From Dimorphilus gyrociliatus (Eukaryota > Animalia > Annelida), in contig CAJFCJ010000030.1 in NCBI GenBank assembly GCA_904063045.1, positions 186,001-250,000 on the forward strand: a DNA stretch of 64,000 nucleotides, written 5' to 3'. This document shows, piece after piece, positions 7,401 to 29,859 of this stretch (position 1 is the stretch's first letter; every line of letters starts with the position of its first letter). The notes beneath the pieces are model-generated. The model worked only from the letters and a program-made list of their open reading frames with translations, was not told where the DNA came from and ran no database searches. The position numbers and the translations under genes were made by a program.

Positions 7401-8528
7401 AATTCTACACTGCTATGGGCAGTATTACTACGGACACGTTGAATGGTTTAATAGTCGATGCTGATGATTTGGTTAAGGCAATATTTGATCAGGGTCCATT
7501 GCCTCTTCCTCAATTAGGAGAATTACGAGAGAAATATACTTTTAATATAACGCCATTTACAGCATTGGCGACTGGAAAGAAGAAAGGTAAAAATGCGAGA
7601 CATAGCGACGATGAGGAAATAGACGAAGAAGATATCGCTGAACAAATCGGCTGTTTTTCTGGTATGTTTCCAGTTTCGCATGGACAAGTTCTGGCTAAGC
7701 ATAGACCTTTAAATGATGCTCAAGCTGACGTCTCTAAGGCAAGTCCAGGAGCATTTGCAGTAGAGAAATTACCACAACATCAAGCTAACATTGTTATGGA
7801 GAGGACAACGCTGGACGTAACCTTACTTCAAAAACAATACAAGAAGTTCGCCGAGAGACAAAAACAAGCGAATGTTATTATGATGGAAGGTAGGAATTAA
7901 ATAACAAATTCTGACATAACTATATATTTATTATCATGATAATTTTATAGCTGCATCTGCAAGTCTTGCCTCCAAGGGCAGAACAAAAGCTCAGAAAGTA
8001 TTAAATGTTGAATCTCCTATTGCCATGAATCATTTGCTCATTGGTCATAAATCATCGGCCATTAGAAATAAGAATAAAGCAGTCGCTATAGCGCCAAAAA
8101 TTGCTGAATTTAAATCTACTCTGCCTCAGCCAAAAAGACGAAACTCATCTTCTACAAGTGAAAAAAGCAAAAATCCTAATAGTCCTACAAAGGTTGAAAT
8201 ATCAAGACAAAATTCGGCTGATCCAGAAGAATATGTTACAAAACTAACTTATGAAACTGCCAAAAAGTCTCATACTAGTGCAGATAATTCCAAATCTCAA
8301 AAAAGTAACTTTTCACCGTTTCAAAGTAAAATTAACAATCGGGTGGCTAAAAATGGCATTAAGTTAGGTTTATATTCCCCCGATTTTATGTACGTGATAG
8401 ATGATCATCACAAGGACGTTCAAAATGGTGATGGCGTTAAAAATATAACAAGGGCACAAATTAATGCCTGTCTGAATAGGCAATATCAAGCTGGCTTGAA
8501 AGGACAAAAATGTGCTAGTCCAATATAA
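1013..8528 (+). CDS. TBC1D30: TBC1 domain family member 30 (Rab-GAP), spliced
   Basis: Phase-consistent GT-AG exons: 1013-1155, 1890-2038, 2123-2287, 5156-5286, 5594-5719, 6643-6828, 6969-7309, 7372-7889, 7951-8528. The translation has IDTQLKFTLEP..FPQWLDAMRGVCRLPCGIPAEFRKKVWLALAD, the TBC R-finger (KDLHRT) and Q-finger (GYCQG), EPPLTNVFTMQWFLTMFATCLP, and C-terminal FSPF..KLGLYSP. All match TBC1D30 as I recall it. Confidence 0.93.
1420..1453. repeat. (CT)n microsatellite in a TBC1D30 intron
   Basis: CT dinucleotide run; it explains the SLSLSL stretch of spurious ORF 1391..1579. Confidence 0.95.
2519..2532 (+). promoter_or_regulatory. Candidate internal promoter element (CRE half-site plus ETS/GABP-type CACTTCCGG)
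   Basis: GGCGTCACTTCCGG lies in a locally GC-rich patch about 100 nt upstream of the alternative ATG exon at 2626. Confidence 0.45.
2626..2704 (+). CDS. TBC1D30: Alternative first coding exon of TBC1D30 (short isoform, MFGVTLPNRRENNWLEKIGDRNVQLN)
   Basis: ATG at 2626 is open to the donor G|GTAAAT at 2704. This is phase 1, the same phase as the exon ending at 2287, so it can splice in frame to exon 5156. Confidence 0.6.
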
Positions 8529-10979: not shown

Positions 10980-11646
10980 AAAATATTTATACAGTATATA
11001 TAACTGATTTTTCGGGTGTTATTTATTACGTATTTTATATTTGATAATAAAAGAAAGCGCTTGTTTTATATAGTTAAAGATATAAATGTGAGATTTTTAT
11101 ACATTCTTTTCATTTCATATTTTTTAAATTATAATAAATACAATAATGTAAAAAAATGAGGATAAAGTTTTTCTGTTATTCGATAATATCACATGATATT
11201 TTCTATCCCAAATTTTTATAGAATTCGACACACTGCACCCGCAGATTTACAGTATTTTTTTTATAGATAACTCTAATAACTGACAATACAAAAAAGGGAT
11301 ATTATATTATAATATACATCATGTATACTAATATACTGTATATACTAATGTATGTATAGTATATAAATTATACTTGAGGTAAAAACAAAACACATTTTCT
11401 TTCTATTATTACTACTACTATTGTATTTATTGAATAAAAATAAAGAAGGGTATTAATTAAGAACTAAATATAGTGAAAAATAGTGTTCGTTTAAGAATAA
11501 TTACTTTCATTGTTAAGGTTAATTAGACAGTAAAGTGTGAAATTATTGTTAATAATAGAATAGGTGATAGAAAATAAGCTCTTTTTTGAGAGGGAATATT
11601 TAGGGAAATTACTTGATTTTCTTATAATCATATCAATTACTGATAG

Positions 11647-14380
11647 TTAGATTCTATCGACCAATTTATCTAAATCAATTATTTCTGGAGCGATTGCTTT
11701 TCTTTGTCTTATTTCCTTGCATAATTCGTCCATTTTTGATCCTTTTTCGAAGGGATCCGAGTCAATCATTTCCCAATGATCAAAAGAACATTGTTCAAAA
11801 GCCTGACCGTGTGTTGCGGATCTCAATGCTGTGTTAAAGCCTGCAAAAGTGTAAAAATTTCTATAATTTCTCTTATATTTTATTCAAGTCAGAAACGTAC
11901 CGAAACTTTGATTAACTGGCAAATATCCTTTTAGAATGTAGATGCCATTGTGTAGATTCTCATCGTAGATCGAGCCCTTCTTTTGACTGAAGAGACTGTA
12001 CACGGAATTTACAGATGTTTGTGGACAAGTGACTTGCACGGAATAAATTGGCTCAAAAATTCTTGGTTTTGCAACATACATTGCCCCAAGAAAAGCTCTT
12101 CTTGCTGCAGGTAGGATTTGTCCTCCTTTTCTGCATTGAGGATCGCAATGAACCAGAGCGTCTACTATGTTAAATCTGATTCCTCTTAATCTTTCCTCGG
12201 CAAGCAATCCCTGGGACGTTACCCATTGGAAAGCTGCCATGATCATATCTTTTATGCCGTCGAGTCCTTGAACAGCTTTTGTACAATCTACAAGAATGTT
12301 TGGTCCTGTGTTATCTGGTCCAAAACACCAGATTTTCTTGGCTTCGTCTCTCTTCCAGCCATGCTTTTCAGCCAACAATCTAACTCTCTCTTTGGGCTCC
12401 TGGATGGCTGTTATCTCTCCTTTTTCTATATCCAAGCAGAGTTCTTCTCCTAAAGGTTCAGCCGTAACAAATAATCTATTCAATTTGTTCGTTGATTTCG
12501 CCAAAGCAACCTTTGTGCTAGTGCCATCTACAGTCTCGCAATAGGTAACAATTGGTTTGGATTTCTTTATTGGTACCTTTGCGAACTCATTTTCCAAATC
12601 ATTAAGGCAAACTTCCAAATGTAATTCTCCCGCTGCTGCTATGATGTGTTCTCCTTCTTCTGATCTCACTTGAACCATTGGATCAGATTGATGTAGTCTT
12701 CTCAATCCTTCGATTAGAGCCGGTAAATCGGCGCAGTTTTGTACACTGACGGCGGAACGTACAACAGGACTTACAGAAAAATTGAGAAGTTTCATGTTGC
12801 ATGCGGTCTCAAAGGACGTTAAGCAAGCAGTCTTGGAAATGAATTTATCAATTCCATAAATGGCGCATACATTTCCACAACTGACTTTGCTAACAGATAA
12901 AATTCGTCCAACTTGCATTAAAGCTACTCTTACTGCACTTTTCACAGGCACTCTAGTTGCATTATCATCATTTGGTCCCATAATTCTGATCATTTGACCT
13001 GCATTTAGTGTTCCCGAAAATACACGACCAAAAGCAAAAAATCGCTTGCCATCAGAAGTTGGTATCATTTTTGTTACGTACATCATTAGATGACTATGAG
13101 GATCACAATTTCTCATGGCGCATGCTACTACATCATCAGAAGGTCCCTCGTATAATTTATCAGTTCTGTAGCGTTGGGCTACTATGGGTGACGGCAGATG
13201 TAAGGCAATCATTCTAACCATTGCCTCTCCGGCGTTCATCCATTTTTTCATGATGTATTTGCAGGCGTCTTTTGACGTCTCCAACTTTTTCCATGGTACA
13301 GCAACGTTCAATATACTTCCTAGTTTATCAACATCTTCTTGAGACTTTTCGAAAGCTCCGAGAAGCTTGAAAACAGGTTCAAGAGCGTACTTGTTGAATC
13401 CTCTAACAGTATCATTAGATCGTGAAGAAGTCCACTTTTTCGTTTTAAGATTAAGAAAGTTTTCATTCCACATTTTCTTCAATAATGATTTTGGATTGAC
13501 ACCCTCAACTTTCTTGGCGTAGAAATCAGCTAATTGAGGCAATGTGAAAGCCCATCCGTGTAAACCGCTTCCAAAGGCTACGTTACCCTTAACAGGATCG
13601 AGCTGATAAATTCATAGTTATATCATTTATTAGCTATAAAAAAAACAAACTAATAGTTTACTAACCAGCCATTTTTCTGATAAATCACTTGCGTAAGTTG
13701 ATACTATTGAATTAACCTCATCCAAAATCGATCGAAGATGAACATAAATACTTTCCGGGTCCATTTGTTTTTCCAAAACACATCTGTCCAATTTGTTCAT
13801 GATCAAAACAGGCGCTACGCTTTCGGCAAGCGCTTGTCTTAAAACCGTTTCCGTTTGCACGCATACCCCTGATACGCAGTCGACCACAACCAAGGCCCCG
13901 TCAGATACCCTCAGAGCAGCGGTTACTTCCGACGAAAAGTCGACGTGGCCTGGTGAGTCGATGAGATTTGTAAGGATCGTTGGCTCGCCACATTCCTTGG
14001 CAACCGATTCTTCCAATTCATACACAACAGATGCAGCCCTATAATATGTTTATCAGTAACTAACGAATATTTGCATAGGGACATAGGGCTTTTTACTTAC
14101 GTCGATTTTATTGTGATTCCCCTTAGCTGTTCGTCCTCTCTTGTATCAGTTTGGCATTTAGTGCCAGCCTTATCCTCAGACAACAAATTTCCTCTAGTTA
14201 AGAGAGAATCGGTTAAAGTTGTCTTTCCATGATCAACATGAGCAATAACTGCAAGATTACGAACGGCAGCTCGCCTCTCCATGAGCTTCTCAAGGTTTTC
14301 AGGGAGATACACAGACTATATAAAAGAAAATAAATACTGTACATAAGACAATAAATGAAAACGTTTATTTAATATACCAT
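11647..14380 (-). CDS. EEF2: Elongation factor 2-like translational GTPase (divergent eEF2 paralog, ~828 aa, no diphthamide His)
   Basis: Exons 14380-14378 (ATG only), 14315-14101, 14038-13666, 13602-11901, 11840-11647. Motifs: [101 protein letters not shown]. These are eEF2-type rather than EFL1-type. The ATG-only first exon and the intron after ITIKST match eEF2 gene structure as I recall it. Confidence 0.9.
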
Positions 14381-14595
14381 ATTCGTCGAAAGTAAACGCT
14401 AACTCCTCGGGTTAAATTAGAAGAACTTGGTTGTGGTAAAAGCGATATTGCCTCTACCACTTTTTTGTCATAGCACTGTACTAGAATAAAGTCTAAGGGA
14501 AACCTTACGCTTTATATACAAATACCATTGCACAACATTTAAATTAGGTCTATGAATTTACAAGGGATTGTGCAATCTAGCTATATATTTTCGTA

Positions 14596-19188: not shown

Positions 19189-22100
19189 ATGTTTTCTCGT
19201 TCTGTAAAAGATAGAAATATCTATGAAATAAGGACTAAGAATCATGGAATATTTCTAACAAAAATTGAGAATGTCGATGAACAATATCAACGTTCTAATA
19301 CCGGCGACTGGTGCTTGAAAGTTTCTAAAAACGGAATCGAATGGTTCACAGTACGAACTGTTTTCGATCGTGTGCTAGAACGATGCTATGTAGAGAGTTG
19401 TGGATTCAGTTGTCCCAGAGCCCATTCATCTATCGAACTGACTCTGTGGAAAATAGATGAAAATGATGAAGTATTTTGCTTAAAATATCTTAAAAAACAG
19501 TTATTAGATTGTCTGGAACAATCAGACACAGACGACTATTTTTCCTCTGCTGTACAGTCATTAACTTCAGATAGTGGGGAACTTGTAGACGTTTTAAGAG
19601 ATGCTCTTTGGTAATTATAGATTTAATTTGAAGCTTTAGTAATTTTTCTGTAATTTATATTTAGGGAACAATATGAACGCGGAAATGGTATGGTAAAGAT
19701 TAAAATAAGTGACAAAGAGATATTTTCCCAAGTTTCATGTGATTATTGTACCAATGTATACAACGCTATCATTTGTAAACTAGACTTCAGCCATAAATGC
19801 TATAAAACTTACTTACTTTTAAGTTTAAATGCTAAAGATTGGTATTCCATAAATAGAACAGAGCAATTTCAAGATGGCAGCCAAATTTCTATTCTTTGGA
19901 GATATATATCTACAATTAATTGTTCTATTACAGATCTGAAACGAGTTGTTGAGGAATGTATCTATAATTTTTTTCAAAGGGAGCAAGAGATGTTAACCGA
20001 GAAATCAAAAAAAAGCCTAGAACATAGTCTTATTACTGATGGCTCTCCAATTTTAATAGAGGGCCCAATTTATAAGCCAAAATGTCAATCTGCCCTAATT
20101 TTAGATGATACTGAAAACAACTTAAATTATACAACAGGGAATTCTTCGATAGATTCACAACAAAACAAGAATGAAGCTCTTAATAACAAATCTCAAATTT
20201 CAACAGAAGCTGTTGTTGGTGCTGTAAATCACTCCACAACCCTCACTACAAGTGATTCTGCAACCGATTCAAGTCAAAAGAAGAAAAGGGCAAGAAATAG
20301 AAAGCCTAAATCTGGAGCTACAAACAAAAAAATTGAACGAAAATTAAGCAGTGTTAAAATAGATCAAAAGCCAATGATAACGATTGACAAAAGAAATTAT
20401 TATATTAATCTTTCCTGCGAAGAATGTTTAAAGCTAGTTGATAGAGATGGTTTAAAATTTTTCAACTTTGATGAAGAAATGAAGCATAACTGCAAGAAGA
20501 ATATTCTGATAGCTTCTACAGAAAATTTTCCAAATGCTTGGTATAAAATAAGCTACAAAGGACCTTCTATTTATATCAAAAACTGTCCATTAGCGTTGTT
20601 ATGTCAAAAGAAAAACTGTAATAAAGCTCATTCTACGATTGAGCATATCTTTAACTTGGCCGAAATAAAGGCAAATGATTTAAAATCTTCATTCCCTATC
20701 ATTCCAAAGTCTTTGAGAAAAAAGTTGCAAACTGATAAAGTAGCTGTTGTTAAAGATTCACAAACGTTATCTGCCAGTAACATAATTTCAAGTTTGAAGC
20801 TTATTTGTGAAAAATGTTGGATAAACGAAAAGTGTATTTGTGAACCTAAAAATAGGTATATATATATTTTAATATTCAATTTTAAAAGGCCTATTAAAAT
20901 AATTTTTATATATATTTTATTTTTCAAAAAGAGCTAAAAACTGTGTTGAAAAAATGAAAAATAGCGCAAACTTATCTACAATCGCCATTATGCTCCCTAA
21001 TAAGATAATTATTAGAAATCCAAATTTTAGTGATTTAACCCAAAAAGCCAATTCTCCTGAAGAAATGGAATGTTGGAAATGGATGAGAGAAAAGAGAATT
21101 AATAATTTGAATACTTTGATAAAAATAGAAGAACAACGAAAATTAAACCCCAATCAGAGAATTGATAATATTATAAAGGCTTTGAATGATCAAACAATGT
21201 CAAATTGTTTACCAGTTAATAATTATAGTTTTGAAACTCATAATTTCAAGGATATCAAGTCTTTATCATGTAATTACTGTAACAAAATTTGTACATCAGA
21301 GAAGCAAATGTTAGCACATGAACAAAGTTCATTGCATATTACTCAAAAATTAATTCAAGGTAGGTATCTACCTAACAATAGAGTTTTTCTTATTAATGTT
21401 TATAATACTATATACTATATGTATTGAAAATATCAGACAACGTAATTTGGAAATTTAGGAAATGTCCAAATCTTTCTGCTACGAATTATCAACTATGTCA
21501 AAAGTAAGGTTTTAAAATTATTCACTGATATTTCTTTTCTTACTCTTATTATTCTTCTTATGAAAACTAGACATAAAGAAGGAAAATGCAAATATTCCAA
21601 ATCGTTAGAAAAGCAAAACTTTTGCGCAGATGCTCATTCGATAGAGGAAATGACAGAGTGGTATGACAGAAAACAGTACGCCTCAAATATGAAAAAAATT
21701 AAAAAAGAAAAGGAGCTATTAAAGCATATTAAAGATTTTAATGAGAAAATTAAGAATGATAAAAGCCTATTGAAAAGAAATATAAGTGGAGTATCTTATC
21801 AGTTGTCTCCTGATTGCCCTAAAACTTCTATAAGTTTAACTAATTCAACTAGTTTTGAGTGGAAAATTTTTCTAAAGGTTAAAATTAATTAATTGCAAAT
21901 ATAAAATATTAATAATAAGGAAGACTTTATCATTAACAGTGCGAACAAAAGCTTAAAGCCATTCATCTTATTTATCCTGAATATCTATTTAACTTTCATA
22001 TTCTCTCCAAAGACAGTCAGAAAGTTTATTATTGCCTTGAAGATGACCTAGAATATACGTCATGTAAGTTAGATTTTGTAATATTGTATTAATACGTACT

Positions 22101-25100
22101 AATATTATATACATTACAGTAAACCAAAGCTATAGTATTAATATTTGCTTTGATTGTATTAAAAATGGATCATTCTATCAATCTCTGATTGTTGAATTGG
22201 AAAATTTAGATAATTTCTTAGAAATTCCATTCTATGTTGATGTTGGAGAAAATGACGCATTAATGAATGTATATTGTATAATGAAATTTATTAGAATTTT
22301 TAATATTGATTTTATCTTCTTTATTCTCTTATAGCTTGAATTTGAAAGATCAAAATATGATTGTCGCGTTTGGTCAAATATGAATTATACCATTATTCCA
22401 TACGAAAATTTTGTTACAGAATTGAATGGGACTACAAATGATAAATTAACAAATGAATTAATGAAGAAGTATAGTAAAAAGAGTTTAAACAAAGTAATTA
22501 TTCAAGAAGAATACGAAAGAGAAGTCAATTATGTAAAATACTATCAAAAATTATTATATTTGGAGGAATATTATTGTCAAAAGTTATTAGACGTATTGTA
22601 AGTAACTAGCAATAGATAAAGTATACTATTAAGAGTAATACTCTATATGTTATTGTTATTACAGCATCCACGGAAAAACAAAAGCAGTTATAACAAACTT
22701 TATTCAAACTGAATTGCATGGTATAAAGTATTCAAGTGATGATACTCTCTTCGCAAAAATCCCTATCAGTAATCTGGTACCCGATACCAAATCTGGAAAT
22801 ATATTGGCAAGAAATTGCTCTTACATTCTAAGTATAAAAATTCTTTATAAAGTTTAATTGGACGCCTATTGAAACAGTATTCTCACTCCCTTTCCCCTAT
22901 GCTTTTCATAGTTAAGGTAATCACAAATGAAGATGATGAAACACCGGTAGTCTATGAAACATTGATTGTTAGAGATTCAAATTTTGGTCTATGTCTCGAC
23001 GATCTCGATTATTTATACGTTCATCTGTCTCGTACAGTGGTCAATTTAATTGGATTGAAGCCGTCTATGGAACTTGAGATAGAAGTAATTTCTATATAAT
23101 GTTTTGGATTATTATTAGTTATTTTCATTGAATTATCTATTTTCTTTTCAGTGTAAAATAGTCTTGAATCCATATAAATTCTGTCATTGGCATTATGCAC
23201 TTAATGAACTGGATAAAAGAAATCTTATTCATCTTACTTCTCCGGAAGATACAGCTCTTAATATGATTCAAAAGATTTATCATTTAACTGAATGGTAAAT
23301 ATTATTGGTAAAAGAAATTTTAATATATTCAATCAATATTCTGCCATTTTGTAGTAAAACTGAAATAGAAACCAATCTTCAACAACGGAAGGTTGTGTCG
23401 GCAATCATTAATCAAAGTCTGCTTGGTTCTAAACCAATTGTTGTATATGGTCCTTTTGGTTGTGGAAAAACAGAAATTTTGGCTACATCAGTCAAAGCCA
23501 TAAAAATAAACAATTCACTTTCTAGAATTCTGATATGTACCCACGTCAATATCGCCGCTGATCTCTATATATTAAAATACTTTCACAAGTATAAATCTCT
23601 TAACATAAAAAGAATCTATAATTCGGATAGGAGATTGGATACTGTTGATGAAATGGTTTTACCCTTTTGTTTTCGTAAAGATAATGAATTCTATATTCCA
23701 TCAGCCAAAGAAATAGAGAACACGGACGTTATCGTTACAACTATCGATCAATGCATTGAATTATACAAGATGAAAGCATACGGATTATTTAGTCATATAT
23801 TAATTGACGAAGCTGGCCAAATTTTAGAATATGAAATGTGGCAAGCATTTCTATTGGCAAATAATAAAACAAAGATAGTTATGGCAGGAGATTATTTGCA
23901 AATGACACTACCAGTTTATTCCGACAATTCCAATTTGAAAATTTCACTATTAGAGAGATTAACTAAGTAACAAATTTCTTTTATATTCATTTAATGAATA
24001 ATGAATTAATTATTCTATTAAACTTAGATATTATATTAGTAAATCGAAAGAGAACTTTGAAATTGTTGAATCGAATTGCATATTTCTGAAGCAAAACTAT
24101 AGAAGTAGACCACAAATTTTAGAATTTCTATCAAAAGCCTTCTATCAAAGATCAGATAGTATTGTATCATGTGGAAACTTTCCAGATAATGGTCCAAGTT
24201 CTATATAGAAAAGAGTATAAATGAAAAATATATATACTTCTCTTTCTTTCAACAGATAATAAATGCCTATACTTTCATAATAATGAAAATAGTAAAGAAT
24301 CATCGTCAAACTACTCTTATATCAATCTTGGAGAAATTCAACAAACTGAATACGTTATTAAGGAATTAATGAGATTGGAAAATGTTAAGCAAGCAAATAT
24401 TACTGTTATTTCGTATTATACTGATCAGGTAATGAAAGTTGACAATTCTTTGAATACTTTATAATGAGTATCTTCAAATAGGTTAAACAAATTCGATGTT
24501 GTCTAAGAAAGGCTGGTTTATATAATGTTAAGGTATTATCGAGTAACTCTGTACAAGGTCAGTTATAGTATTTTATTAATCAATCATAATAAACTTTTAG
24601 TAATACAAATATAAACTATTGAAAATAGGTCAAGAATACGATATAGTCATTATAAATACAGTCAGAACTGAATATCTTGATAATCAGGAAACAGTTAATT
24701 CGTTCGGATTTTTCAATGATAAATCTCTAATTAATACTATTATGTCAAGAGCCAGACACAAGATAATAGTAATAGGTTGAATTTGCAATTTTTAATAGAC
24801 TCTTCTATTGTAATTAAATTGAAATTTTTGTTTGAAAATATAATTCAGGTAATGGCAATTCGTTATGCAACTATGGAAAATGTACTTCAATATGGATAGA
24901 TTACATTAAAGAATGCTCTAAATTAGGCACATTTTATCCTATTGATTATGATCTAAATTCGATGTTTAATTCTGCCATTAATTCGAAAGAATATGAAGAT
25001 ATAGATAGTGAATGTGATAACATTCTCAAGAGATTAGCCGAAATGAAAGTGGATATGAATTATGAAGATTATGAATTCAAACAATTGGAAGAATTATTAC

Positions 25101-28100
25101 GTTATTCGGATTTCAATTTACCTAAAAAAGTTTATAATATTTTTCCTGAGACGGCAACGGAAAGTGTTGCTAGATTCGATAGACCTAATACTGTTACGAT
25201 TTTAGAGAAAAAACTATGTCGTATAGCTTTTAACAGTATACCCTGTGCTCAACCGTTGAGGCCGGAAGAAGCTGAAATAGTTATTTCAGCATTTCAATTA
25301 GATATAACTGGATTAAACTGTAACGAAGATAATGAATTATATAATTTCCGAAATTTTTCAGATCGGAGATTTTCATTCCAAGACGATTTAACAGTTGTTG
25401 GATTTTATGAGTTAGCTGGAAAAAAATGGCCTTTAGTATTACATATTGTAAAAAGAATGCGAAATTTTACAGGTGATGCAATATTGTGTAGAGCAAATAT
25501 TCTACAAAGAGGACAATTCATACCTCTTAATAGCGCTATCCCTAGGTTAATTTGCTGTAATTGCGAGAAAGATAACAATGGATTTCAGATACCCATTTTT
25601 AGTTCTTACAAATCAATTAAAGAGAATAAGAGTGTTGATGTTCATAGTTCGAAGAATCTTCTTTTCATCATTAGATGTTTGGTTTGGTCACGGAAACACC
25701 ATTATTCTTTGGGTATTTGCATTGGTTACATAGACATTAAAAGCGATCTATCTTCTACGATCAAGGCATTAAATTTTAAGACTAATCAACCACATCGAGT
25801 AAAAGAACTTTTCTTTAAGAGTGGCGAATTTAAAGCTATTGCGTCTACAGGAGAAACTGGTAGAATAGATTTAACTTCTCACTTTGCCTTTACAATAGAT
25901 TCTGAAAATACAAGGATGGCTGATGACGCTTTTACCTTTGAGAAATTCAGTTCGCAACACTATAGAATTGGAGTTCATATTGCTGATGTATCAAGGTTTA
26001 TTCCTAAAGATTCTGTTGTTGATAGAGATATCAAGAAAAGATGTATAAGCTATTATGCAACTATTGGTATTACTCATCATATGTTTCCTACACAAATTGG
26101 CGATTTTTTTTCTTTGAATCCTCATTGTGAAAGATACACTTTAACTGTATTTTATGAATATGATAATGGCCAATGGATTAAAAGTGATCCTATTAAGACT
26201 ATAATCAAATCAAAACGGAAATTTTCTTATAAAACTGCACAAGATATTATTATTAATAATAACAATCATAATATTTCTCTTGACCTAAGAAGGATGTATG
26301 AACTTGTACAACAATTACGTAAATTACGATTGGGTATTTCATTTTTTTCAAATACTCTTAACTTTGATTCGCCAGAAAATGAAGCACAGAGCTTAGTAGA
26401 AGAATTAGCTATACAAACGAATCATCGTATTGCAGAATATTTATATTCTCGTTATGATAATATTCTTATTAGGACACAATATCCTGCTGAATTAAAATTA
26501 GAAGCTTGGAAAATTGAATATTACGAACACAACCTAAAGAATTTTGAATTATCATCGAATCATGTAGGTTCAACAGCAGAAAATAAATTTAATCCGGAAA
26601 GCGTTAATAAAAATCCGGTGGAAATATCTAAATCAAAATGGCTTAAAATAATTGATCTTTTGGAGCAAAGTGAGATAAGAGAAGCAAAACGAATGTTAAC
26701 CGATACGAACAATTTTCCAAAGCATGGTTTGTCTTTAGCTGCTCTTCGAGACTCTTTGAATAAGTCAGCATATGATGTATGCTCTTCAAACTTTAAAGTC
26801 GGACATTTTGGTTTAAAATTGGATATTTATACACACTTTACAAGCCCAATAAGACGATACATTGATATTGTAGTTCAAAGACTTGTCACGAGAGCTTTAG
26901 AGGGTGAAAATTCTAATATATATAGTATAAGGGAGTTATTAGAAATATGCCATGAATCAAACGTGAAGATTAATGCGTCTAATAGATACAAAAGTAATCT
27001 TGCCATGTTTGGTTTAACCTTTCTATTGAAGGAGAGAAGTGCATTATTCGAAGTCGTAATACATAGCTTTAGTATAGGATCGGTTGACGTTAAATTTTTG
27101 AAGTTAGGAAGCCTTTTGAATTCGACATGTCGAACTATTAGAAGCGGTTATTTGGGACTTAATAAAACTCCTGAACTTACAGATGATGATTTATTGAAGC
27201 TTAGTTGGAAGCAAAAGATATATGATAATAAAATTTCGAAATGCCAGAATACAAATAACAAAGTTATACAATTGGATAATAAGTCTAATGTAACTAAAAT
27301 CCCAAATAGAATATGGCAAGAAATATTGACTTTTATAAAAGATGATAAAGGAGAAAAAATTGTTAGTTTATTATCAAATATGAAGGATTTAACAAAGAGA
27401 ACTCATGAAATAGAAATTCCTTATGCAACTTCTTCTCTGAATCTCGATTTAAATAGTACAGTTTACGAGTATGAAAAAACTCAATCAATTGTCGATCGTG
27501 AGTTTGTTCAGTTTGAATTATCGATATCAAAAGGAGATATACTTAAGTTACAAGTGGGATGGGCTATTGAAAATAATCTTCTTATACCGAAACCACAATA
27601 TCTAAAGTTGTCATCCAATCATGGAATTTGTATTCAACATTCTTCAGATGCAATCAATAGCTTTACCAATTTTACACCATCAAAAGCTTCATCTCTTAGA
27701 TACTCTACGATATCGCAATACAAAGAGTTATGGAAACCGATTTTAGAGTTGAATGCAGTGTACAATTCACTGAAAAATAGTGAAGGATATATTTTAAGAA
27801 ATGTAGAAATAACCTGGATGAAACTATTAAAAAATACCTTTGGCTATTTCAAATTCAATGAAAAATTGAACACGGAACTTAAACTAAAACTTGACGATGA
27901 TGACTATGTTTGTATAAGATACTATAATATTTATAAAGAAGAAAACGATAAATGGTTAGATAATTTAGATATCGAACCTTTAAAAACCGTCTTAAATAAC
28001 TTGTACAATAAACAAGACACGTTTCAGGAACTCTCAAATTTCTCTGTAAGTAAAATAAAAGAGATACATTCAAATTACAATGCAAACTGGAACGATATTG

Positions 28101-29859
28101 TTTGGATTGGTCATGGAATTATAAAAACTACTGATGATGGTTTCGAAATTGATTTAAATGAAGCGTCTAGAAAGTTACACCCAGAATTGTTGGGAGAAAC
28201 ACAATATTTAGCCACCTTAGAAATAATTCATAAGTCTTTGGCAGATAGATATCGCATTAAAGCTATACAAAGTTTAAATTGTGATGAATCGTCATTAGTT
28301 AATGATATAATTTTGGCTAAAAACAGTCCATCATCATCAAAAACTGTAACTTTTGATAGAGTTACCTCTGTACCTGGATTATTCTGTCTGAATACAAATC
28401 AAACTAGAGCTGTTAGCTCTGCATTATCTCAAGAATTTACTCTTATACAAGGACCGCCAGGAACTGGTAAAACTTTAACATGCTCCCATTTAATCAAGAA
28501 TTTTTTGGATAGAAATAAACCCGGCGAGGTTCTAATGTTTTGTGGACCATCAAACAAATCTGTTAACGTTATTATGGATTATTTGGTGAAAATTAGTGGA
28601 ATTAATTTCCTAAGAGTTATGGGTCAGACTGCTGAGATTCTCGATTTTCCGTTACCGAAACGTAAAGGTAATATAGCCGACCAATCGGAAAATCTTAAAT
28701 ATGATCCGAAAATGAAAAAGTATATTTTACATCAAATTGTACACGAAGATGTAAAAGTTCAACAGATATATAAGGAAATTTACGAATGTACCAATATTTT
28801 AGAGATGATGGAGAAAACTGAAACTTACTTACAAATATTTAAAGAAAAGAAAATTGAAAGAATAAAGAAATCTAGAATTATTTTAACAACTTGCACGAAT
28901 TCTTATACGAAGGTTTTGAGAAAAGCTTTTGATAATGGAGAATTAAAACTCAAACAATTGATAATTGATGAAGCAGCTATGTGTACTGAAGCTGAAACGC
29001 TTATACCAATGGCTACCTATAAACCTGAACAGATTGTGTTAGTTGGAGATCAGCAACAATTGGAACCTATTGTGACTTGTATGACCACTGTACAATTGGG
29101 ATCAAAACAATCATTGTTTAGTCGATATGCAAAACTAGATCCAAAAATCATGGTTATGTTAACCGATCAGTATCGAATGCATTCAGAGATTGCTCAATTT
29201 CCTTCAAAATATTTTTATAACAGTAAACTTAAACCAGTTTCAGAATGGCAGACAACACCTTTAAATGACATGTATACAGGAGCAGTTTTCTATCATATTA
29301 TTGGTAAAGAAAAGTCAACATATGTTAGTACAATACAATCAGCGGAAATGTTTAAAAGTAATGTGGAGGAAGCGAAATTTGCTTTAAAAGCTATTGAAAA
29401 ATTAAGATTGAGAGGTATAAAACCAGAGAATATCGTTGTACTGGCGCCATATAGAGCTCAAATATTTGAATTATTCGCTTTAATGGAAAAGCAGTCTTAT
29501 TACAAACAAAAATTATATCTTGGAGTATCTGTTCAATCCATAGTTTCTTCTCAGGGCAGTGAATGGGATTACGTTATTTTAACTTGCGTCCGATCGATAG
29601 ATGAAAACTGCAACCCGCCGAAAACATTGGGTTTTATAGGACATCCAAATCATATTAATGTTGCTATTACAAGAGCAAAGAAAGGTTTAATGATAATAGG
29701 TAATATCTGAAATCGTTAGTTATTATTAAATTTATTATTACTAATATGTTATTATTACTATTTACAGGAAACGAAAATGTATTATGTAAGTATCTTTGTT
29801 GGGAACATCTATTGGAACATTACAAAGCTAAACAATGCATAGTTAATGTTAATATGTGA
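19189..29859 (+). CDS. HELZ2: HELZ2-like protein: zinc fingers, UPF1-like SF1 helicase, RNB (RNase II) domain, second SF1 helicase; 5' end uncertain
   Basis: C3H 'C..AHS.EE..EW' fingers near 19380, 20600 and 21600. U1-type C2H2 finger CNYCNK..QMLAHEQSSLH near 21270. Helicase 1 has GPFGCGKT and DEAGQ; RNB has TID..DDA, GVHIADVS and HFTSPIRRY; helicase 2 has QGPPGTGKT, DEAA, GDQQQL, QYRMH, SQGSEWD and NVAITRA. Multi-exon, ending in exon 29768-29859. Confidence 0.88.

Follow-up and report, generated by a model that had tools for sequence, protein, structure and literature searches.

A spliced and conserved eEF2 paralog without the diphthamide histidine in the annelid Dimorphilus gyrociliatus

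Results

The stretch of DNA analysed here, the window, comprises 64,000 nucleotides (nt) of the annelid Dimorphilus gyrociliatus (positions 186001-250000 of contig C30 in the 77.9-Mb assembly G000, which was also the genome searched). Its minus strand carries a complete five-exon gene for a paralog of the translation elongation factor eEF2, in which the histidine that is modified to diphthamide in eEF2 is replaced by cysteine (Table 1). The coding sequence (CDS) of 2487 nt encodes 828 amino acids (aa) and a stop codon, and is interrupted by four GT..AG introns of 62, 62, 63 and 60 nt. The protein is identical in sequence to the NCBI protein DgyrCDS14124 (P0001). The G+C content of the gene is 41%, compared to 28% for the window.

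The substitutions that set this protein apart lie at the tip of domain IV. The canonical eEF2 of D. gyrociliatus reads DVTLHADAIHRGGGQIIP at this site. Its loop is H-A-D-A-I-H-R-G-G-G-Q, compared to H-x-D-P-x-C-R-K-G-G-Q in the paralog. The canonical pattern H-x-D-x-I-H-R-G-G-G-Q, with a modifiable His, is thus not found in the paralog, which in this respect is a non-canonical eEF2. As the histidine is absent, the paralog is unable to receive diphthamide. A preliminary description of this DNA had placed a stop-free frame of about 828 codons at this locus and read His715 as Cys and Gly717 as Lys (human numbering). The frame and its position agree with our gene model, with DgyrCDS14124 and with a spliced contig from a public sequencing run (X7), and the two residues are Cys687 (TGC) and Lys689 (AAA), also in the X7 contig. 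An assembly error, which would have appeared as CAC and GGA codons in reads, was looked for, and independent contigs carry TGC and AAA.

Elsewhere the catalytic core is retained. The G1-G5 motifs, described earlier as intact, are indeed all present (AHVDHGKT, DSPGH, NKLD and GSGLHGW), with GKT in the P-loop of the paralog where canonical eEF2 has GKS. Of the residues that contact the codon and anticodon, the Dimorphilus paralog retains the counterparts of yeast H694 and D696; it has Cys in place of diphthamide and Leu in place of His583.

Table 1. Features of the eEF2 paralog gene, in window positions
Feature	Position	Strand	Basis
Complete paralog CDS, 828 aa, 5 exons (DgyrCDS14124)	11647..14380	-	built model, identity to P0001, X7 splice junctions
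Exon 1, ATG alone	14378..14380	-	model; X7 junction 14315/14378
Exon 2: N-terminus, P-loop AHVDHGKT (14220-14243), switch I as far as ITIKST	14101..14315	-	Pfam GTP_EFTU, motif translation
Exon 3: remaining G-domain core including DSPGH (13945-13959) and NKLD (13786-13797)	13666..14038	-	model, Pfam, motifs
Exon 4: G'' insert, domains II, III and IV, start of domain V	11901..13602	-	Pfam GTP_EFTU_D2, EFG_III, EFG_IV, EFG_C
Exon 5: end of domain V, C-terminal helix, TAA stop (11647-11649)	11647..11840	-	model, Pfam
Domain IV tip loop, equivalent of the diphthamide loop	12109..12162	-	alignment, translation
TGC, Cys687 at the diphthamide His position (yeast H699, human H715)	12133..12135	-	alignment; X7 and X8 contigs
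AAA, Lys689 at the Gly717 equivalent	12127..12129	-	alignment; identical in X7 contig
TTG, Leu at the yeast His583 equivalent, second tip loop (SPNKHN to STNKLN)	12481..12483	-	alignment, translation
Mature transcript, approximate span; 5' untranslated region at least 34 nt, 3' untranslated region about 200 nt	11448..14414	-	X7 contig; 3' end inferred

Transcription and selective constraint were examined with public sequence data. Contigs of four public runs were aligned to window positions 11500-14500. The X7 run gave a single contig of 2720 nt that starts at 14414, extends 52 nt beyond 11500 and is 100% identical to the window, skipping 11840-11899, 13603-13665, 14038-14099 and 14316-14377, which are the four predicted introns. 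Because this contig is identical and lacks exactly the four introns, neither the residues nor the gene model are assembly artefacts. Spliced contigs of the paralog come from three studies in all, X7 and the metatranscriptomes X1 and X2. The X1 contig is a variant, about 96% identical, and 24 of the 30 listed coding differences are synonymous. The depth of the X7 contig is about 3025, a value that cannot be used as an expression level or to rank genes.

An ortholog (L009, protein P0002) is present on a genomic contig from a related worm (Logan SRR23372228). It has the same four intron positions, and its protein is 78% identical to the paralog. Between the two, nonsynonymous divergence (dN) is 0.137, synonymous divergence (dS) is >1 and dN/dS is 0.06-0.12, and the paralog is therefore under purifying selection. 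Two checks proposed in the preliminary description thus came out as it had expected: the gene is transcribed and correctly spliced, and dN/dS is far from 1.

The paralog belongs to the eEF2 family. A Pfam search found GTP_EFTU, GTP_EFTU_D2, EFG_III, EFG_IV and EFG_C, the five-domain organisation of an eEF2 of about 830-860 aa. The EFL1 domain PF25118 scored 27.7 bits, under its cut-off of 30.9, and the N-terminal domain of EFTUD2 (PF16004) was absent. In a phmmer search of PDB sequences, eEF2 chains scored 860-910 bits, Snu114 536 and EFL1 375. The AlphaFold2 model has a mean confidence (pLDDT, predicted local distance difference test) of 84.4, and in fold it is closest to ribosome-bound eEF2, which it matches end to end with TM-scores (template modelling scores) up to 0.86. 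In a tree with EFL1 and Snu114 as outgroups, the paralogs fell inside metazoan eEF2 with a support of 95 (Shimodaira-Hasegawa-like approximate likelihood ratio test), and amoebozoan eEF2 fell outside. This is the branching that the preliminary description had predicted, and its statement that the protein is not EFL1 holds on the tree, on the PDB scores and on the presence of a separate EFL1-type gene (below). The paralog is nonetheless distant from its own canonical copy, at 49% identity, compared to 76-81% between canonical eEF2s of different phyla.

The entire D. gyrociliatus assembly, searched in six frames with the large exon of the paralog, yielded the remaining family members. The canonical eEF2 lies on contig C20; it has 843 aa when spliced, carries HADAIHRGGGQ and is 48.9% identical to the paralog. 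A gene for EFTUD2/Snu114 lies on C19, with the PF16004 N-terminus just upstream, and the EFL1-type gene lies on C1, with PF25118 at 35.7 bits, above the cut-off. Homologs of the diphthamide synthesis genes are also present: two PF01866 loci (DPH1/DPH2), dph5, PF01902 (DPH6) and two zf-CSL loci (DPH3/DPH4). The genome thus holds both the HRGGGQ eEF2 and the DPH genes for which a search had been suggested; the canonical eEF2 is presumably modified with diphthamide, and the paralog is therefore an addition and not a replacement. The two dph5 loci differ in structure. One (C203:10643-11389, L017) consists of a single continuous frame of 266 aa, on a small contig and scoring 277.6 bits, and could be a retrocopy or a contaminant; the other (C2:1545186-1546386, L018) is a multi-exon gene on a large contig.

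The intron pattern is eEF2-like, as described earlier. Three introns have the same position and phase in the paralog and the canonical gene (after the ATG-only exon, a phase-2 intron after ITIKST and a phase-1 intron in ESFG|F), and the fourth lies where the canonical eEF2 gene of the hemichordate Ptychodera also has an intron. As the ancestral introns are kept, the paralog is a DNA-level duplicate, and we rejected an origin as a retrocopy. For the same reason, that these are ancestral eEF2 introns, intron positions cannot separate the paralog from canonical genes.

The same tip is present in other annelids. Capitella teleta has a protein, also of 828 aa, with HTDPACRKGGQ (CAPTEDRAFT_217885, P0005), and a transcript from Logan SRR28002506 (P0041) has HRDPSCRKGGQ; both keep the His583 equivalent. 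A degenerate DNA pattern of the tip motif, run against metagenome contigs, found six intron-containing contigs from four assemblies (L026-L031) with H[ST]DPACRKGGQ, which also have GKT and K[LH]NR[IL][FY][MV]TA. Together with the Dimorphilus protein and its ortholog L009/P0002, these make up the CRKGGQ sequences, whose named hosts are Dinophilidae and Capitellidae. In a careful maximum likelihood (ML) tree of 33 sequences the CRKGGQ clade had a support of 100/99, and the canonical eEF2 of Dimorphilus grouped, also at 100/99, with the canonical eEF2 of another annelid. When the metagenome sequences were included, the clade, now of eight sequences, divided into at least five sub-lineages and had a support of 100, and it persisted without the domain IV columns (support 99). 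Judging by these sequences, the paralog is a conserved lineage and not an oddity of Dimorphilus, a point missed in the preliminary description. The tip motif is nearly invariant among members that share only 54-68% overall identity, which argues for selection on the new tip itself. In public records the gene is labelled only as an unnamed CDS or a 'hypothetical protein' in the two named annelid genomes, and the enteropneust proteins described below as 'elongation factor 2-like'.

Wider searches added new members only through the degenerate DNA pattern described above. In a domain-IV-only word search with the Dimorphilus protein, every match after P0002 was a canonical eEF2; a profile built from five paralogs placed only the same five above the canonical background, and an all-against-all search of representatives found many eEF2-like proteins, none with a CRKGGQ tip beyond P0002. 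In other annelid proteomes there was no CRKGGQ paralog among the matches listed, which suggests absence. A candidate relative from Acipenser ruthenus (P0003, 'Elongation factor 2', 828 aa) was rejected: its score is inflated by an internal duplication of the domain II-IV region, and it looks like an annotation artefact.

The genomic surroundings are not shared, as the window has no neighbours in common with the Capitella, L030 or Ptychodera loci. A gene of the pyridoxal kinase type (Phos_pyr_kin/PfkB) lies directly upstream of the paralog, in the same orientation, in Capitella (L012, 1308-3736) and in L030 (800-3342) only, and a search of the whole Dimorphilus assembly for PF08543 gave no match. 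One metagenome contig of 1.5 kb (L028, JAAUXW010209526.1) carries on its minus strand three near-identical tip-loop exons with Cys-Arg-Lys, about 220 bp apart (423-457, 643-677 and 869-903). These may be tandem, perhaps mutually exclusive, exons or an assembly artefact.

Look-alikes were also found in enteropneust hemichordates. Ptychodera flava (P0004) and Glandiceps talaboti (P0024) each have an 837-aa 'eEF2-like' protein and a canonical eEF2 on the same chromosome, the two genes being 20 Mb apart in Ptychodera. The enteropneust loop, HPEC-HAGSQ, is two residues shorter and has Cys at the His site, and GKT, DAxVH and KLN recur in these paralogs as in the dinophilid protein. Each shares 73-74% identity with the canonical eEF2 of its own species, with almost all changes in domains IV and V: at canonical-invariant sites they keep 125 of 129 residues in the G domain, 59 of 61 in domain II and 56 of 57 in domain III, but only 57 of 78 in domain IV. 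Identity between Ptychodera and Glandiceps is 84.6% for the paralogs and 85.6% for the canonical eEF2s.

The full-length tree grouped the enteropneust paralogs with the annelid clade (95/97), but this grouping was lost when domain IV columns were removed. Approximately unbiased (AU) tests rejected neither separate hemichordate origins (p 0.112) nor an annelid-only origin (p 0.144). Because the tests were non-rejecting and the grouping dissolves without domain IV, we do not claim a duplication of bilaterian age. The link between annelids and hemichordates could reflect a very old duplication, lost again many times, or Cys-tipped eEF2s that arose by convergence.

Other divergent eEF2 relatives appeared in the searches. 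A Drosophila nasuta 'eEF2-like isoform X2' of 1178 aa (P0382) has HADAVHRSGSQ, with the His kept, Ser at the Gly717 site and an additional PAP-associated domain, and may be another divergent animal eEF2 copy. In the representative library, many proteins of eEF2 length from public assemblies have R, Q, K or A, not His, in the diphthamide column (P0261, P0266, P0278, P0279, P0292, P0294, P0337, P0338, P0349 and others), so that diphthamide-less eEF2 relatives may be commoner in eukaryotes than the literature suggests.

Elsewhere in the window, a large gene on the plus strand (19690-29710) encodes an RNB exoribonuclease domain between UPF1-like superfamily 1 helicase domains (AAA_11/AAA_12), a HELZ2-like architecture. 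Open reading frames of 157-415 aa at 7415-7900, 8025-8528, 19690-20937 and 20954-21427, also on the plus strand, had no Pfam match.

Discussion

The data above describe an expressed member of the eEF2 family, under selective constraint, that lacks the modifiable histidine. Since the same variant is found in other annelids, an essential translation factor exists here in a natural form free of diphthamide. What might such a protein do? Three roles were raised in the preliminary description (toxin-insensitive translocase, decoy or neofunctionalised GTPase); the reading we favour, and consider probable, is that the paralog would act as a diphthamide-independent, ribosome-dependent GTPase of the translocase type that could not be ADP-ribosylated at the tip site.

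This reading draws on the canonical mechanism. Diphthamide 699 is the sole contact of eEF2 with the mRNA codon, assisted by His583 and Asp696, while His694 contacts the ribose of the anticodon; unlocking of the decoding centre is aided by the trimethylammonio charge that diphthamide carries (PMC8674143). The Gly717Arg mutation prevents diphthamide formation and renders ADP-ribosylating toxins ineffective, yet translation still works, and its authors suggested that the extra positive charge mimics diphthamide (PMC2816718). From the five-domain fold, the retained GTP-binding and catalytic motifs and two of the four codon-anticodon contacts (H694 and D696), we infer that the paralog would bind the GTPase centre of the 80S ribosome and insert its redesigned tip into the decoding site. 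There, by analogy with Gly717Arg, the positive charge otherwise given by diphthamide would probably come from the Lys at the Gly717 position. A G717R-like, toxin-resistant factor has a basic residue at this position or lacks the His, and resists ADP-ribosylation; the paralog has both Lys689 and Cys687, and its resistance would be expected by this analogy. By construction it would escape toxins whose ADP-ribosylation target is diphthamide. All that this scheme says of binding to the ribosome, of translocation, of a compensating charge and of toxins is read from the sequence.

Several points weigh against it. His583, which assists diphthamide, is also replaced in the dinophilid paralogs, and the Lys is absent from the hemichordate look-alikes. 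The dinophilid stem branch of the 33-sequence ML tree is very long, with some 2.2 substitutions per site. Of 404 sites at which 27 canonical animal eEF2s are invariant, the Dimorphilus paralog has lost 120, with losses in every domain, which exceeds what toxin escape alone would require. The evidence for expression consists of contigs, whose depth cannot rank genes.

The strongest alternative, which we hold possible but clearly less likely, is neofunctionalisation. The paralog would still be a ribosome-associated GTPase but no longer a general translocase, and might serve to hold dormant ribosomes, in quality control or recycling, or on a special class of mRNAs, with its tip tuned to a partner other than the codon-anticodon helix. 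The 49% identity to the canonical copy, the very long dinophilid stem and the replacement of two of the four codon-anticodon contact residues all fit such a change. So does the hemichordate pattern, where change is concentrated in domains IV and V, as expected if only the A-site probe had switched job, and the conserved Cys suggests a gained role over simple loss. Dormant 80S ribosomes contain eEF2 together with SERBP1, and structures of eEF2 on dormant 80S ribosomes are among the best fold matches. However, the G domain and the domain III and V surfaces used in canonical ribosome cycling are kept, the Lys at the Gly717 site matches a translation-competent mutation, and neither a partner nor a distinct domain was found.

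A role as a toxin decoy or sink, in which eEF2-directed ADP-ribosyltransferases would attach to the paralog but leave it active, thereby sparing the canonical factor, is very improbable. Its sole basis is the absence of the target residue from an otherwise eEF2-shaped protein. The loop that contacts the toxin is heavily altered, so toxin binding should weaken and not persist, and a decoy would not need the strongly conserved GTPase machinery.

Two further explanations are refuted. Decay or loss of constraint in a duplicate, or an error of assembly or annotation, might account for the strong divergence from the canonical copy but not for an intact frame with exact introns and an identical spliced contig, a dN/dS as low as that found here, or a tip motif that recurs in Capitella and at least seven further sequences. 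The sub-threshold EFL1 match is all that would favour the paralog being the EFL1 (Ria1) or EFTUD2 (Snu114) ortholog of this genome, against which stand the separate genes on C1 and C19 (the latter with the EFTUD2 N-terminal domain), the position of the paralog inside metazoan eEF2 and PDB scores that favour eEF2 by more than 300 bits.

How does the paralog compare to known systems? It resembles canonical eEF2 (yeast Eft1/2, human EEF2) in its five domains, length class, G1-G5 motifs, ATG-only first exon and intron positions, and its predicted structure aligns with that of ribosome-bound eEF2 at a TM-score of about 0.85. It differs by His to Cys, Gly to Lys, Ala to Pro before the site and GKS to GKT, and in dinophilids also by His583 to Leu. 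With the Gly717Arg mutants of Chinese hamster ovary (CHO) cells it shares a basic residue at Gly717 and the missing target for diphtheria toxin, exotoxin A and cholix (PMC2816718). Those mutants keep the His and have one residue changed in their only eEF2 gene, whereas in the paralog the His itself is replaced, and the change is ancient and fixed, in a second gene beside the canonical copy.

Diphthamide-free factors are known outside animals. Parabasalids and some Archaea have EF-2 without diphthamide and have lost the dph genes, and archaeal EF-2 paralogs have been described (Narrowe et al. 2018, PMC6143161). Like the worm paralog, these are natural EF-2 members with a diverged, unmodifiable loop. 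In contrast, the worm keeps the dph genes and a canonical eEF2, and its paralog arose within Metazoa and has a conserved Cys. The enteropneust eEF2-like proteins share with those of annelids a Cys tip and a second gene beside the canonical one, with common descent unproven. EFL1/Ria1 and EFTUD2/Snu114 are a precedent for neofunctionalisation, being eEF2-derived GTPases that retain the fold but no longer serve as translocases; unlike the paralog they are pan-eukaryotic, longer (EFL1 about 1100 aa) and carry extra domains or inserts, and they are separate genes here. In the literature searched on EF2 paralogs, diphthamide and Dimorphilus, which included Narrowe et al. 2018 and Atkinson 2015, we found no description of an animal eEF2 paralog without the diphthamide His. 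What appears new is the animal CRKGGQ eEF2 lineage; diphthamide-less archaeal and parabasalid EF-2 and the G717R cell lines were already known.

A bolder proposal concerns the Cys. It could be a gained functional group, redox-sensitive or itself modified, that marks a second, toxin-immune and diphthamide-independent translocation system, one that either predates the split of protostomes and deuterostomes and was then lost in most phyla, or was invented twice, by annelids and by enteropneusts, through the same change of His to Cys. We regard this as speculative and rather unlikely.

The purpose of the seven or more genes devoted to diphthamide is a long-standing question, and to our knowledge the modification is usually described as universal on eukaryotic eEF2. 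Here, a natural and conserved animal eEF2 without it, with apparent built-in compensation in the Lys and the invariant Cys, sits beside a normal copy. The pair offers a ready comparison for the part that diphthamide plays in maintaining the reading frame, and bears on whether ribosomes can use two different translocases. It also raises the question of whether sediment-dwelling invertebrates may be intrinsically insensitive to eEF2-directed bacterial toxins.

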